Assembly (NCBI GenBank): GCA_028534125.1
Contig: CM052825.1
Coordinates: 26,040,001-26,104,000, forward strand
Direction: 5' to 3'
DNA length: 64,000 nt
From: Lama glama
Taxonomy: Eukaryota
A program made the position numbers and the translations under genes. The notes under the pieces were generated by a model that saw nothing but the letters and a program-made list of their open reading frames with translations, made no database searches and was not told where the DNA came from. Positions 34,129 to 44,029 of the stretch are shown one piece after another. How positions within the stretch are numbered: position 1 is the stretch's first letter; the number at the start of each line of letters is the position of its first letter.

Positions 34129-36911
34129 GCTGGGAACGCTAGAAGAGAGGAGCGGGGCTCAGCTCAGAGCTGCTGCCGTTGCTGCTGTGGTGCCCCAATG
34201 ACCCCAGGGTGGCTGGCAGTGCCAGGGCTGCAGGCCCTGGCTAATACATGACATGAATGGCCCTGACAAACACATCCACACAGCCACTGGGCCCATAGGT
34301 TGGGGCAATGCAGCTTTGGGTCTGGTCACAGGGCTGGTAGTGGGCCCAGGTATCCATCTCCAGTCCAGGCTGCTGTGAGCATAGGCCCAAGCTACCCCCC
34401 ACCGTTACCCTGAGAGAGGTCAGTGCTTTCCCTCCCATCCCCAGAGACAAGCAGGTAGAACAGGTGAGGTCACATGACCTTCTCACCAGGGCGCACAGGG
34501 CTGAACACAAGGGAACTGATTACAGTTCATGTGCAGCACGTGAAAAAATGCACAATCTCATTAACAATTAAAGTAATGTAGATTAAAAATCTTACAAACC
34601 TTGATTAACTTACTAAGCTAGCAAGAATAAAGATAAAAATTGACACAAATTGCTGCTGAACTGAGGGAAATCGCATGCTGCTGACAGCTGTGGGCATTGT
34701 TGCAGGTGCCCCAGAAGGTGCCTGGGGACACGCCTGGTGCCCAAGTCCATCTGCTGCCCAGTCAGCCCCTGGGGAAGCCTCAGTGCTCAGCCAACAGGCC
34801 CAGCTCCATGGGGCTCCTGCCTCTGCCCTGACCCTGCAGCCTCCAGTGGTGCCCATCCTTCCCTGGGAGCCCCATCCTCTTGTCACAGCCAAACACTGCC
34901 TTCAGGACCTATTCCCCAGCCAGGAAGTGTTCTAGAAAGGGGGGTGGGAGTTCTCCAGCCCTGGAGAATGGATGAGGGGACGCCCGCCTTCCTGGCCTCC
35001 ACTACCTTCACCTGACCCCTGAGCAGCAAGGACAGCCCCAAGTGGCTGTGACTCCTGAATTCTGTGTGACCCTGAGCCTTGCCCAGCCCCGGCTTCAGCC
35101 AGCTGTAGATGTGAACTCTCAGTAAGCACCCCATTTCCCACCTGAGCCCTCCCAGATGGGGCCTGATGGACAGCAGGTTTGCCTGGGTAGGGGTTTGCCT
35201 TGGGGCTGGCCCTTTCCCAGACACTGATGACCCCACTGCACCAGCACAAAGGGCAGAGCAGCTGCCCTGAGCAAAGACCCCTTCAAGTTGGAGCCACACC
35301 TGAGGAAAGGACACAGGTGAGGACAGGAGGACAGAGAGGGACACACGTGTTGGGGAGATGCAACTGGTACAGCTGCTTTCCTCCCCTGCAGGTGGTCCAG
35401 AGCGGGGCTGGAGGGGTGAGGCCTCTTCCACCTGTAGGTTCTGAGTAAAAAGGGTCCCTCTGAGTGAAGCAATAGCCAGACTCCCAAATGGCCCACCCCC
35501 CAGTGACCAGAAAGGGCAGGGAACATGGGTGTCGACAGGGGAAGTCCCTGTGGCCATCGGCAAGGGCATCAAGGGCCACCTTGTCTTCCTGACACTTCTG
35601 CAGGACCATTGTGAGAGGGACAGAGCGATTCTGTCAGGCTCCTGGAGCATCTGGCTTGGTGACCACTGTGGGGGATCAGCCAGCATGGTCCAAGTCTCTC
35701 AGCACCAGCCTGTCAGGACCACCAGCTCAGCCAAATGACAAGATCATACCCTGTTTGGGGACTCCTTTCACAGCAGCTAAGGAAAACTGCCAAAGCTACT
35801 GTCAGAAAAGAAACACAATTGGGCAAACAGTAATCAGATGCTCTGGGGGAAGCTGGTTACATGGCGGGTTCACTTTCAGAAAATTCATTGAGCTGTACAT
35901 GTACGATCTGTGCACTTTCTTTGTGTGTCTTATGCTTCATCTTCAAAGTTGACCTTAAAAAAAAAAACAAAACCTCCTCATGTCTCGGGAAGCGTGGAGG
36001 GCAGAGGTTGGTGTTCCCAACCATGGGGTAGTGAGAGAGAATTCAAATCACAGGGCAAGTTCCCATTCCCACCCTGCACCTCAGCCTCTGGGAGTAGCCA
36101 ACACAAAGAAGTCTGCTCTGATCAGACAGCCAGGAAAAGATGAAAGAGCAGGCAATCAATAGCAGAGGTACAGATGGGAGAAAGCAGGGCAGTAACTCGG
36201 TACCGTGTGCAGCTTTAAAGACTGTGATAAAAACAAGGGCGCAGGCCTGGGAATGCTGCCTCTGTTAAGAACGATGCCCAGTTCTCTGTGACCTGGCCCA
36301 CTCCCAGATCAGTCAGGTAACGCAGTCTCTGGGACGCCCCTTGTCACAAAACCTGAACTCAACAGTCTACCTTAGGAAGTGGACAGCCTCCCATCCCTTG
36401 CATGAACTGATTCAGGGCAAAAGCCCAGTTATGACTGGCCAGGGACATTTCACTAAGACCCTCCTTTGTAGAGTCTCACCCTCACTGATCCTCAAGAGCT
36501 CACAGGAATTCGTTTTCACTCCATGTGTTTGTGTTTAAAAAACAACAAGCATTCAGTAAACAGTACTTTTCCCCTCTCGTTTCAGAATGGACATGAATCT
36601 AGGACTCTTTTTCCACAGTTACTGCAGTCAAGGACACTACTACTGTAAAGCGCTGACAGCCAGTTCCATTGACCCTGAATGCTCTTCGAAAGAGTGCACA
36701 TCGGGACACAAGTTGGTTGGGCGCAGAAGAAACCAGCCAGGCCCTCTCCACCCCACAGGGCTGGGGTGCACCCCAGTGGGATGTACCCCGGCCAAGAGCA
36801 CTCACGCGGCCCTGCCGCAAACCCGGGGGTGGGTGGGCGCGCTCCTGAAGCGGGTGGCGGGGCCTCACAGCCCTCCCGAGTCTCAGACCCGCCGTTCCCA
36901 GCGGCCAGCAG

Positions 36912-36960
36912 AGCCCCCATTTTACGGATGAGGAAACAGACTCTCCGAGAGGCAAGAAGC
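36912..36960. mobile_element. MIR core fragment
   Basis: cccattttacggatgaggaaacagactc; similar remnants at ~14550-14585 and ~39660-39700. Confidence 0.6.
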
Positions 36961-37111
36961 CTGCGCAGCTCCGAGAGGAGGCTCCGGAGACCCTTGGGCT
37001 CCTCAGCCTGCGCCTGGGACCACCGCAGCGGGAGTCGGAGCCCGTGGTCCGGCGGGGGCAGCTCCCCAAGGTCGCGCCTCATGGACGCCGGCCCGCCCCC
37101 CAAGTGCTCAC

Positions 37112-37260
37112 CGGCTGCTCCCCGGGGCCGCGCCCTCGGGCGGCGGGGTCGAGATGAGGTTGGGGACCGCGTCGGGCGGGCGCGGGCGAACGGCGGCTCT
37201 CGCTGGCCCCAGCCCAGCCGCGGCTGTGCCGCGGGACACTAACCCCATTTCCGCCGGCTC
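37112..37260 (-). other. PIGQ: PIGQ non-coding exon 1 (5' end approximate)
   Basis: Donor AGCAGCCG|gtgagc at 37112 inside the CpG island; CCGGCGGAAATGG (ETS/YY1-like) near 37245-37257. Confidence 0.7.
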
Positions 37261-37790
37261 CAGGCGTTGCCGCGTGACGGTCCTCCTTGAAAGGCACCCG
37301 GGCTGCCCGCCAGCCCCTGGCCCGTGCGTTCCGTGTACGCAACGTTCCGGCCCCCGGAGCTAGAGGCCTGCGTGCGGCGCCCTTGTCCCCGCTCAGAATC
37401 TTTGTCCCCACTCCAGTCTACCTAGTGCCCCCAATACCTCTGCCTTCCAGTTCCCCACCTTCCCACAGCCACCAAACCTCCCCCATCCCTGCTTTCCTCA
37501 TGTAAGTGACTTAGTGGACTCGACATTTGAGGATCCCAGACCTTATCTTACACCCACCCTTCCAGATGATAGGGCCTCTAGGCCCTGGGTAGAGTCCCAG
37601 GCTGACCCCCTTGTACCCTGGTCCCTACATAGGGCCCCCCACCCAGGCCCCTCGAGGGCCAAAAGAGCTAGGAAGTTTGGAGGGCCAGCCTGGAGGCTGA
37701 AGCCATCTGATCTGATAATCAGGAGGCATCCCTGACCCTCCTGCTCCTGGGAACGGTATCCCTAATACCAGCAGCAACAACTAACTCATG

Positions 37791-37796
37791 TTTATT
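37791..37796 (-). terminator. Candidate NHLRC4 poly(A) signal AATAAA, inside an old L2/MIR-like fragment
   Basis: Plus-strand TTTATTGAGTACCTGCTA, ~810 nt after the NHLRC4 stop. Confidence 0.55.
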
Positions 37797-38607
37797 GAGT
37801 ACCTGCTACACATCTCCTTACACCGACCCACTTAATCCACCCTTTTCTCCACAGGTCCTTGTGATTGGTGCATCCCCTCACCAGCTCCCAGGGACAGGAC
37901 TAGGCACTGTCTCCTCCCTCTGAAGACCCCTCACTAGAACTAGAAGCCTGGCTGGGCCCCAGACTCAGTGTAACCCCAAACCTCCCCACCCTTTTCAGCT
38001 TCATTTTCGTGCTGCTTTTAAGCAGCAGGAGTCTGTCCTCACAGGAGGGCTCTCTTACACTTGACCACTGCCCATAACTCTCCCAGCACCCCCACATGAG
38101 CTTGCAGCTCTTTGATCCCATCTGCAGAGGAGAAAATGAAGGCTCAGTTTCACATGGGAGAAAGAGCCGGCATGGAGGCTTCCAACCCAGCCATGTGTCA
38201 CCACAGGGCTCCTCCAGGGTGGCCCCTCCTCTGCTCCCCCCTTACCTCAGCTGGGCCCAGAGAAGCTGCAGGAGACTCGGCACCTGGGGCCTCTGAGGAT
38301 GGGGGACAGTGAGGGGCCACACCCCTACCCAAACTACACTGCCCGGCCCAGCTCAGCCCAGCCATACCCTCCCTGCCTGCCTCTGTCTGATTAGGAGCTA
38401 GGACTGTCAAGGAAGTCTGAATCCTCTGTGAGAGAGACAGGAGGACAGTCCAAGGCCTGGCTCAGAAGTGTCACAAACATGCAGGGTCAGGAAGGCATGG
38501 CCAGCAGCCCTCCAGGACCCCACCAACCCTGAACATTCCTCCCATCATTGTCCGGGCCCTGGAGGCTGGGACCATGCACAGCTGGTCTCCCCTGCAAGCC
38601 CACCAGA

Positions 38608-39555
38608 TCAGGCCAGATCCAAAAGGTACTGGTACACTTTGATGTAGCCATCCCCTGCATCCGCCACCATGAGCTGGCCCTGGGGTGTACAGGCCACACC
38701 CAGGGGCTGCCCTAGCCCCTCAGACACCAGGCAGATGGGTGCCCTGTCCCGGGGGAACAGGGTCACCTGGCACTGCTGCTCGTCCACCACAATGACACTG
38801 CCCGCTGCATCAGTGCACACACCTGCTGGGCTGCCAAAGCTGTGCCCAGTCAGTCCTCTCAGGGAGCCCAGGGGCTGGCAGGCACTGCCAAACAGCCGCA
38901 CATCCCCAAACTCTTCACTCACAGCCAGGCCCCCATCAGGCCCTGGGCCCACCCAGCAGGGGCCCTCCAGGCCCAGTATGGAGGCAGGGGCCAGTGGCTC
39001 TAAGGCAGGGCCCAGTGTGAAGCTGTGCACAGCCCCGGGCACATAATCTGTCACCAAGACTCGACCAAAGGCATCCACAGCCAGCCCCTGGGGGGCCAAG
39101 AAGTTGCCCACTGTCACCCAGCGGCCCTGAGGGGCTCGGGCAGTGTGCTGGAGTGCACGGACAGTCCCGTGGACGAGGTCACTGACTACCACGAGGCCAG
39201 CAGCTGTCACAGCCACATCCTCTGGCACGAAGTCCCCAGCCCCTGGAATGTGGCAGGGCAGGTGGCAGACAGAGCGTCCCTCAAGGTCCAGCACGTGGAT
39301 GCAGGGTGCAGTCCCCGCTGTCAGGAAGAGCAGGCCATCTGGGGAGCAGTGCAGGCCCCGGGGCCCCCCTGCAGCCCCTTCAGGCACCGAGATCCGCCCC
39401 AGCAGCTGGGGCTGCCAGGAGTGAACAGGGTCTCCAGGCAAATCCAGTGTGAGGTGCAGTCCTTGGGGGGTGGCTGATGAACTGGTAGGGGAGGTCCAGG
39501 AGGTCGAAGTAGGTGGATGGACAGATGTCACAGCCTCAGCCTCTCCAAGCCAGTC
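38608..39555 (-). CDS. NHLRC4: NHL repeat-containing protein 4, main coding exon; open frame of 315 codons encoding six NHL repeats (true start not determined)
   Basis: The C-terminal 123 aa (38608-38979, ILGLEGPCWVGPGPDGGLAVSEEFGDV...IKVYQYLLDLA) match NHLRC4 as I recall it, in the syntenic position between PRR35 and PIGQ. The frame is open up to a TAG at 39556-39558. Confidence 0.88.
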   Translation of the reverse strand, partial: DWLGEAEAVTSVHPPTSTSWTSPTSSSATPQGLHLTLDLPGDPVHSWQPQLLGRISVPEGAAGGPRGLHCSPDGLLFLTAGTAPCIHVLDLEGRSVCHLPCHIPGAGDFVPEDVAVTAAGLVVVSDLVHGTVRALQHTARAPQGRWVTVGNFLAPQGLAVDAFGRVLVTDYVPGAVHSFTLGPALEPLAPASILGLEGPCWVGPGPDGGLAVSEEFGDVRLFGSACQPLGSLRGLTGHSFGSPAGVCTDAAGSVIVVDEQQCQVTLFPRDRAPICLVSEGLGQPLGVACTPQGQLMVADAGDGYIKVYQYLLDLA

Positions 39556-40089
39556 CTACAGCTGGGCCAAGTTTGAGGCTACAAGAGAAATAACACCCCA
39601 CCCCATGCCATGCAGCGCTACATTGGTTCCCCTGCACACTTCTTGGCAGGCAGGTGACCTCGTTTCACAGATGAGGAGATGGAGGCTTGGGGCATGAGAC
39701 GGATTCAACTCAGTTCCACCAGGTCCCAAGTACCAGCCATGGCTTGGGACCCCATTTTCCCAGATGTGGTCCCTGAACACAAATCTGGGAGACACACCCC
39801 AGGAAGGATACTGTGGGTTTTACTCTGAGGCCCAAATGATCTCAGGGGCACCTAGATGTCTGAGGTGGGGGTTGGGGTGACAGATGAGCGGTACTTCTCA
39901 GACTCATCTGCCTACGGAACCACTCCTTCAAGCAGGGAAAGTGACCCTTCTTGGGGGCAGCCCAAGCCCTCGCCCATTGCCCCAGATAGCCCTTGGAGAC
40001 TTCCAAGCCCTGAAGGGTAAAGCAGGGGCCCTTTCCTAGGCCTCTCTGCCCACTCCCACTGAAAGAGGCTGTGGGGAGGGGTCTCCTAC

Positions 40090-40176
40090 CTGGAGCCAGT
40101 CTCCCTGGTCCCTGCTGGGCATTAGCCTCTGTTGTTGGAAACCACAGCTCAAGGGAGTGGGAGGAGCCACCTCGGC
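40090..40176 (-). other. Candidate 87-nt upstream exon of NHLRC4
   Basis: cctccccgcccccgcag| acceptor, CAG|gtagg donor, length a multiple of 3, open in two frames. Confidence 0.5.
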
Positions 40177-40881
40177 CTGCGGGGGCGGGGAGGGGCAGGC
40201 GGAGCTCTAGCCATGGCTACCTTAGAGCCTCAGCCCAAAGAAGCTCTAAGGAATCCTGTCACTCAGCTGCTAAACCTCCCAGGTGCTCTCCAGTGTTGCT
40301 GCATTCCTGCCTCAGAGCCTTTGCACTGGCCTCTGGAACATTCTTCACTCTGCCCCTGAATAGCTAGATGTAATCCTGGTCCACCCAGCCCCTCTCCACA
40401 GGGGGCCCAGTGCCTCCACAACCTGCTGAATGTGAATCAAGGGCTTGGTACTCAGGAGACAGCACTCCCACCATCCTCCAGCAGGACCACAAGGTCAAGA
40501 CCTCAGGGAAGGAGCTGTGCCCCTGACCTGCTAGCTGGATCACCTACCAGAGTCCAGGGTGGGAGACCTCTAGGGGGTCCGTCCTGCCTCCCACAGACTA
40601 GGCAGGTTGAGTCCTGTCTCTCTGGTCCTGTTTCTGCACCTATGAAGCAGGGATCATGCCCTCCCCTCTCAGCAGGGACAGGCTTCTGTCTGTCCAGTGA
40701 TTAGAAACTGGGGTGCATAGGCACATGGGAGTGTTAACGGGAGGGCAAGGGGTGTCTCCCTCAGACTCAGGACCTGGGGATTCTCCAGACACCTCCTGAC
40801 TCAGCCCACAGCCCCCATAAGCCCATACAGGAAACCCCTGGAAGGTTGGGGGTCAGCCCATGTCTGTGACCCACTCCCTAC

Positions 40882-40909
40882 CTGGCCACCCGCAGCCCAT
40901 TTCTGGACA
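40882..40909 (-). other. Candidate 28-nt upstream micro-exon containing GAAATGG (MGCGWP)
   Basis: cactaacctgccctctgcag| acceptor, CAG|gtagg donor, ATG at 40900 with -3G/+4G. Confidence 0.4.
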
Positions 40910-41659
40910 CTGCAGAGGGCAGGTTAGTGATGCTATCTGCTGCTCGGCAGAGTTAATGGGGCAGCCGCGGGTCCTGATCCGACTGGCCCAGCCTGGTCAA
41001 CCCAGCTCAAGGAGCCAGGCGCAGGCAGGAACCGCACTCCCTAGGGCCATTCCTGGGTGGGCATGGAGGTGTGGCCAGCTCCCGGGGAGAGAAGCTGTTA
41101 GCTGGGTCCGACAGTCCCCCAGGCACCCCTCCCTACCTGTCCCCCGCCTCCCCTTCCAGCCCCCCACTGTGGGAAAGCCAAGTCTGGTGGTGCTAGGAGG
41201 TAGGCAGTGAGCTGTGAAGGCCACCCGATGCCTATCGTGGCTGCAGGGCCTGGCAGGGGCCCAGCAGAGGCCACGCTAGGCGAGCAGCCCCAGGCCACAG
41301 AATGTGGGGGGCACTGTTTCACCACAGGGGGAGCAGCCTCCCACATGAATCAGATATTAGGACTGCCTTGCCAGACGCGGGGGCTGGAGGCTTTCCTAGG
41401 GGCCCCCACCCACCCCCCACATGCAGAAACAGGCCTGACCAGCTCCTAGACCATGCACACCTGCCTCTGTACCCCTCCTTGCTCTGTCCCCTCCATGGAA
41501 AGCCCCCCACTCTCTCCCCAGACTTCGGCCCCCCCAGGAGGTCCCAGTCTACAAGAGGAGGCTGAGGACACTGCCCTCTATGTCCCATCTGGGGACATTT
41601 CCACGGAGGAAGCAGCAAGGGAAGGAGGCCCAGACAGAGTGTGTGAAGGTGGTTTCTAT

Positions 41660-41665
41660 TTTAAT
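41660..41665 (-). terminator. Probable PRR35 poly(A) signal ATTAAA
   Basis: Variant hexamer ~190 nt after the stop, in the only AT-rich patch nearby. Confidence 0.65.
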
Positions 41666-41851
41666 ATCCACACTGTGATCAGTAAAGAGCTGTGACTCTC
41701 TTCTGTGCCTGTGTGGCCCCAGACAGGCAAGGTCACAGCAGGTGGGGGTCTGTCCATGGGCATGCTGGGACAGGTAATGGGGCCAGGTGGTGGGCACAGG
41801 GTTAGAAGGGCCCCTGTCCCTTAAAGACAGAGGTGGCAGCAGGAGCTGTGG

Positions 41852-43796
<1,945 letters not shown>

Positions 43797-44029
43797 CTAG
43801 TGGGCTGGCCCTGGCACCATGGCGACCTGCGGAGGGGGGCTTCGGTCAGCACTGTCTGCTCTGACCAACGCCCCCTCCCCTCTGTCACAGCTCGAAGGAT
43901 AAGAGCTGGGACACTGTCACCCCTTGGCCCTCGGGCTCCCTGGCTTTGGCATGCGCAGCCCCGGCCTGGAACAGCCTCCCCGCCTCCCTCCTAGTTCATC
44001 TCACCCACACTTGTAGGGTCAGCAGACGT

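Follow-up and report, generated by a model that had tools for sequence, protein, structure and literature searches.

The last exon of llama NHLRC4 is predicted to encode a complete, stand-alone six-bladed NHL beta-propeller, spanning about residues 45-312 of an uninterrupted frame. The exon lies on the minus strand of a 64,000-nucleotide stretch of Lama glama DNA (GenBank assembly GCA_028534125.1, contig CM052825.1), referred to here as the window. Taking all the evidence together, we consider it very probable that NHLRC4 is a full propeller read from one frame, that the short form found in databases is half of that fold, that translation starts upstream, and that the protein has a protein-binding role. 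The long form is already known from camel annotation and from a published prediction for the human gene.

The open frame and its orthologues

By ORF translation, 315 sense codons form a single open frame at 39555-38611 (minus strand) that ends in TGA (38610-38608). Together they make up the coding part of the last NHLRC4 exon (38608-39555), which shows 97% identity to residues 12-326 of Camelus ferus NHLRC4. On the 5' side the frame is shut by a TAG (39558-39556, minus strand), whose AG (39557-39556) serves as the splice acceptor in the RefSeq-type model. At the position where 123-aa models put their Met, the llama exon carries an ATA codon (38979-38977, Ile193 of the exon-2 frame, context ..PAS-I-LGLEGPCW), and the sole in-frame ATG of the exon encodes Met296 (38670-38668), 20 codons before the stop. 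In the unspliced exon, the TAG is followed by 295 codons without an in-frame AUG. The original prediction had described an ATA 123 aa before the stop, a frame open for 192 codons further 5' and a lone Met about 20 aa from the C-terminus; all of this was borne out, and the frame was found to be closed by the TAG.

In the protein similarity search, the best match was NCBI 'NHL-repeat-containing protein 4 [Camelus ferus]' (P0001, 326 aa), with 97% identity and E = 4.6e-203. All named matches at E < 1e-30 were NHLRC4 except for three labels, namely a TRIM3-like protein, a sheep 'Uncharacterized protein' and a black rhinoceros 'hypothetical protein'. The upstream 192 codons alone (38980-39555) matched named NHLRC4 proteins at E = 5e-121. 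Judged by these sequence matches, the frame is the camelid orthologue of NHLRC4, a little-studied gene. A chance open frame was rejected in view of the match to NHLRC4 proteins at E = 4.6e-203. A sequencing slip that turned ATG into ATA was also rejected, because the Camelus ferus protein has the same Ile and orthologues often have Val, Ile or Leu at this position.

The identity to P0001 extends across all 315 exon-2 codons, with nine residues differing from the llama frame, a divergence that probably reflects a camelid genus other than Camelus; the camel model shares the 11-codon first exon and its junction. Its start is computational, and models from other orders lack that start. Long models with the N-terminal half in frame were found for camel, horse, sheep, buffalo, bat, two rodents, a monkey and wallaby; those of horse (330 aa), bat (338 aa) and wallaby (336 aa) represent the same gene. 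For many other species, the databases hold NHLRC4 models of 123-150 aa. Some bat and colugo models are flagged as low quality or are visibly broken. In the Plecturocebus cupreus model P0012 (356 aa), blade 2 reads ..HGDCPCTPAHSPGPGGRW.. where other mammals have ..HGAVRALQHTARAPQGRW..; the sequences suggest a short frame shift with later compensation, or else a model or assembly error.

Coding character of the upstream half

On the 315-aa product, the Pfam NHL profile (PF01436; curated cut-off 20 bits) scored 44.3 bits; run separately on residues 1-192 and on residues 193-315, it scored 23.0 and 29.5 bits, respectively, so that the whole frame and each half exceeded the cut-off. An NCBIfam profile search of the frame gave sub-threshold matches only. 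Among PDB sequences, the NHL domain of TRIM3 (7qrw) matched residues 64-311 and Drosophila Thin (6d69) matched residues 50-301, each running through both halves, and designed Pizza6 proteins matched the frame at up to E = 3e-21.

Selection was judged by protein conservation, with alignments of orthologues that included the 295-aa ORF P0006, possibly a primate sequence. Comparison of residues 45-192 with residues 193-315 gave identities of 87 vs 85% in horse, 84 vs 79% in sheep and 84 vs 77% in bat. Among these eutherian sequences, the N-terminal half is conserved to an equal or greater degree than the C-terminal 123 residues. The wallaby keeps the frame (51% identity in the N-terminal vs 58% in the C-terminal half), and two non-mammal relatives, P0053 and P0056, can be aligned from residue 48 to residue 311, with 45% and 44% overall identity, respectively. 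GC content by codon position was also alike in the two propeller halves (.77/.53/.70 and.72/.50/.72), unlike that of the intron read in the same frame (.57/.55/.55).

The 192 upstream codons are therefore coding sequence for NHL blades 1-3 and the strand that closes the ring, in support of the earlier claim that the annotated 5'UTR is coding, which now rests on the Pfam score of the N-terminal half alone, the AlphaFold2 fold and protein conservation. Coding-type conservation ahead of the first AUG, with no AUG back to the stop, is the pattern of the class described by Ivanov et al. 2011, and it was found here at the protein level and for the unspliced exon.

Predicted propeller structure

An AlphaFold2 model was built from 20 orthologues (mean pLDDT 82.5, pTM 0.79). 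pLDDT was about 85-96 for residues 50-310 and above 90 over most of the propeller. The model contains 24 strands, one of which is N-terminal (residues 50-56, QLLGRIS, 39408-39388, minus strand) and conserved down to the wallaby and non-mammal orthologues, with 23 others following it. Blades 1-3 were placed at 39363-39256, 39225-39103 and 39093-38977, all absent from the 123-aa form, and blades 4-6 at 38961-38863, 38829-38725 and 38706-38629 (minus strand). Blade 6 has just three C-terminal strands of its own. A count of 1 + 23 strands therefore gives five full blades of four strands each, with the N-terminal strand filling the gap in the sixth, and we infer from this count that strand 50-56 is the fourth strand closing blade 6. 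Because blades 1-3 and the closing strand are coded upstream, translation has to begin 5' of about nt 39408.

In Foldseek, the best matches were the NHL domains of TRIM2/TRIM3 at E about 1e-17, with TRIM2 (7qrv) at E = 1.6e-17, TM 0.78 by target and 288 aligned columns. The absence of a propeller fold had been named beforehand as an outcome that would speak against the full-length reading; a confident six-bladed propeller was obtained instead. The earlier proposal of three NHL-like repeats ahead of the three known ones agrees with the predicted blades, and the six repeat segments quoted with it correspond to the first strands of those blades.

The leader (residues 1-44, 39555-39424, minus strand) is predicted to be disordered and is poorly conserved. 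Its pLDDT was 31-38 for residues 1-41, and its identity to other orders was 27-58%, vs 72-87% for residues 45-192. The leader's codon-position GC (.61/.64/.50) lacks the pattern of the propeller, and its composition has a non-coding look.

The run of 295 codons without an in-frame AUG, the missing Met of the short form and the low-quality or broken bat and colugo models could be taken as signs of a decaying or non-coding locus in camelids, from which no functional full-length NHLRC4 is made and in which the open frame survives as a recent relic. We regard such decay as very unlikely, since the 315 codons are free of stops and frameshifts at 97% identity to Camelus ferus, the N-terminal half retains 72-87% identity across orders, the predicted pLDDT exceeds 90 over most of the propeller, and sheep and buffalo retain the frame, also without any Met.

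The 123-residue short form

According to the predicted model, the 123-residue form would comprise blades 4-6 without the closing strand, that is, half a fold. Of 53 orthologue rows, 23 have Met at the 'start' of this form, 14 have Val, 8 Ile and 4 Leu, and the projected 123-aa model P0032 begins with Val. In the AlphaFold2 model, the Ile193 position is the final residue of the fourth strand of blade 3. The variation among Met, Val, Ile and Leu therefore marks a hydrophobic strand position and not a conserved initiator. The original prediction had taken the annotated protein to be 123 aa long; this holds for human and for the projected models, but Camelus ferus, the closest annotated relative, already has the long form.

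A different reading would make the three-bladed C-terminal half the functional unit, pairing into a six-bladed ring in the manner of designed three-blade Pizza proteins, with the upstream half conserved for some non-coding reason. The designed three-blade protein Pizza3 (3ww8) is indeed among the sequence matches, and 123-aa models are common in databases. However, the llama codon is ATA, so that such a product has no start, and the corresponding position is variable across species to the point that P0032 starts with Val. The upstream half, moreover, carries NHL sequence, is coding-like in composition and has a fold predicted with confidence, and in the C-terminal half blade 6 is one strand short of four. 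We find this reading barely credible and retain the full propeller as the product of the frame.

Where translation starts

Translation of the full propeller would begin upstream of nt 39408. A near-cognate start within exon 2 (CTG 39447-39445 or GTG 39531-39529) has about an even chance of being correct, an exon-1 AUG (40122-40120) spliced to 39555 somewhat less than that, and a start in some other upstream exon only a small one. The whole propeller is made from any of these candidate starts.

Among the in-frame near-cognate codons, CTG 39447-39445 (residue 37, minus strand) has the best context, with A at -3 and G at +4, and lies at the onset of cross-species conservation (..LTLD..); its product would be 279 aa. 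GTG 39531-39529 (residue 9, minus strand) has G at -3 and A at +4 and would give 307 aa. A composition scan listed CTG 39459-39457 and TTG 39441-39439 (minus strand) as the other in-frame near-cognates of the leader. The original prediction of a protein longer than 300 aa therefore stands if the exon-1 AUG or the GTG is used, but not for the CTG. A near-cognate start in exon 2 would parallel the prediction for the human and mouse gene. In orthologues, the ORFs P0020/P0025 have an ATG (residue 36) one codon 5' of the CTG 39447-39445 position, and ORF P0124 has an in-frame ATG at leader residue 10.

The NCBI Camelus ferus model would make non-AUG initiation unnecessary: in it, splicing of 40090 to 39555 removes the TAG and yields 326 aa from ATG 40122-40120. 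The coding part of the candidate exon 1 (40122-40090, minus strand; ATG + 10 codons, MPSRDQGDWLQ) is identical to the start of P0001 in 11 of 11 residues. The intron of this RefSeq-type computational model (40089-39556, minus strand; 534 nt) runs from GT 40089-40088 to AG 39557-39556, and P0001 joins ..DWLQ to DWLGEAE.. exactly at that AG. The junction, checked exon by exon against the camel protein and by hand frame arithmetic, is canonical GT...AG in phase 0 and leaves the frame uninterrupted. Exon-1 DNA is furthermore conserved enough to show up in bat and gopher models.

Several observations weigh against this start. The context of the exon-1 ATG is weak (T at -3, C at +4). An alternative and stronger-looking acceptor AG (39580-39579, minus strand), the first AG after the pyrimidine run TTATTTCTCTTGT, lies 23 nt upstream of AG 39557-39556; by hand arithmetic, its use would keep the TAG in the mRNA and put the exon-1 ATG out of frame, giving a 27-codon ORF that ends at TGA 39530-39528. 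In other species, the models have unrelated N-termini or read exon 1 in other frames, and those of buffalo and sheep are partial and lack a Met. Such a pattern is typical of a predictor hunting for an AUG. The horse model, for example, takes as its start an ATG that aligns with ATT near 39590, and its frame continues across the TAG position. The human and mouse genes have also been published as non-AUG candidates. On balance, the exon-1 start remains somewhat short of an even chance, and the 326-aa camel model could, judging from the sequences, be an artefact of gene prediction.

The bat (P0004) and pocket-gopher (P0008) models contain VSNNRG, which corresponds to 40142-40125 (minus strand), where the llama frame runs into a TAA. 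Exon 1 is thus conserved across orders as DNA and not as a frame, as expected of a 5' untranslated exon. The unrelated N-termini and the shifting leader ATGs suggest that this ORF has no AUG shared across species. Further 5' than the exon-1 ATG, another ATG in strong context (40214-40212, GCCATGG) opens a 21-codon ORF (40214-40152, minus strand), and a CCCCGCCCCC box lies at about 40190-40181; their presence in the transcript would depend on where transcription starts.

In the wallaby model P0021 and the non-mammal P0053 and P0056, the propeller is preceded by a shared, conserved N-terminal segment of 60-75 residues (MD..KE.LLRT.R.LQ..). Eutherian NHLRC4 models do not have this segment, and a tblastn search with the wallaby and non-mammal N-terminal 60-75 residues found no remnant of it in window positions 36001-44000. 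From these comparisons, the ancestral start seems to have been lost in the eutherian lineage. A fuller scenario, in which eutherians lost the ancestral AUG segment and camelids and ruminants translate only from a near-cognate codon, likeliest CUG 39447-39445, is plausible to us, if a little more likely wrong than right. Were it true, NHLRC4 would be among the few mammalian genes whose sole product begins at a non-AUG codon, with in-frame leader AUGs coming and going in other lineages.

Genomic neighbourhood

Upstream of NHLRC4 and on the same strand, a 363-aa ORF with a Pfam zf-C2H2_7 match (E = 1.4e-29) lies at 43787-42696 (minus strand), followed by a second long ORF at 42688-41852 (minus strand). 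The motif ATTAAA occurs near 41665, after the second ORF. Downstream of NHLRC4, three exon-like tblastn matches with 57-81% identity to the C-terminal part of P0094 lie at 27775-25203 (minus strand). P0094 is a 278-aa marsupial-like model in which a hydrophobic tail follows the last NHLRC4 blades, and this tail is probably PIGQ. The two flanking regions would fit an order with PRR35 upstream and PIGQ downstream on the same strand, both names being putative. Human NHLRC4::PIGQ conjoined transcripts have been reported (PMC9315513), and the downstream matches to a fusion of NHLRC4 with a membrane protein fit them.

Implications for annotation

For the llama genome, the gene is an ordinary orthologue whose long form is already annotated in a close relative. 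The wider issue is one of annotation: the human reference CDS and many projected 123-aa models represent half of a fold. Studies of NHLRC4 that rely on antibodies, knock-outs, variant effects or structures should accordingly be based on the product of about 280-330 aa. The Human Protein Atlas localisation of NHLRC4 is 'Mitochondria', as quoted in PMC9789052 Supplementary Data 6; the target of the antibody behind it would be the short annotated form. The camelid ATA and the ruminant CTG/TTG-type Leu codons are natural experiments in which the annotated Met is dispensable. With lineages that have no in-frame AUG in the exon, NHLRC4 would make a clean test gene for exclusive non-AUG initiation.

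Comparison with known systems

The literature search found no publication devoted to NHLRC4; the 36 papers that mention it do so in gene lists, partly judged from titles and abstracts. One of them, a gene-list hint, reports reduced NHLRC4 expression in a Klf1 mutant erythroid model (PMC11327367). Human NHLRC4 (NM_176677.3, MANE Select) is among 28 genes in Supplementary Data 3 of Fedorova et al. 2022 (PMC9789052), for which, as cited there, a conserved non-AUG N-terminal extension had been predicted by Ivanov et al. 2011 (PMC3105428). Its extension was still unannotated in GENCODE v35 (PMC9789052), and NHLRC4 is not listed in the supplements of Rodriguez et al. 2024 (PMC11317171). By this listing, human NHLRC4 likewise has coding-like, AUG-free sequence upstream of the AUG of the 123-aa CDS; the 2011 study compared human and mouse mRNAs, and the propeller fold is not discussed in the part of its text that was consulted. 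Our comparison with human draws on publications and annotation. To the 2011 prediction, the present analysis adds a modest structural argument: the short form is missing three blades as well as the strand that closes the ring.

UFSP1 and R3HCC1, as described in PMC3105428, need a CUG for the full-length product, and their annotated AUGs lead to truncated products without essential parts. They resemble NHLRC4 in that mammals differ in where the first in-frame AUG falls and the frame is bounded upstream by a stop. NHLRC4 differs from both in that a spliced AUG may serve as its start in this camelid.

With respect to fold, the closest known systems are the NHL domains of TRIM2, TRIM3, TRIM71/LIN-41, Brat and Thin (7qrv, 7qrw, 7qrx, 1q7f and 6d69), which are six-bladed, comprise about 270 residues and have an N-terminal closing strand. 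NHLRC4 matched them in Foldseek at E values of 1e-17 to 1e-12 with TM scores of 0.74-0.79 by target, but with only 19-24% sequence identity. Unlike these TRIM-NHL-type proteins, NHLRC4 has no RING, B-box, coiled coil or filamin domain. The Pfam search of the frame returned NHL only, with no RING, B-box or coiled coil, and at most about 55 residues precede the propeller. NHLRC4 is therefore not a TRIM protein, even though its propeller is closest to those of TRIM2/TRIM3. The NHL domains of Brat and LIN-41 have a basic RNA-binding face. Residues 45-315 of NHLRC4 have a pI of about 5, with 1 Lys, 11 Arg and 24 Asp+Glu, and such an acidic propeller would serve as a platform for binding proteins. 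From charge and domain content alone, NHLRC4 is thus most likely a protein-binding platform and not an RNA-binding module of the TRIM-NHL kind.
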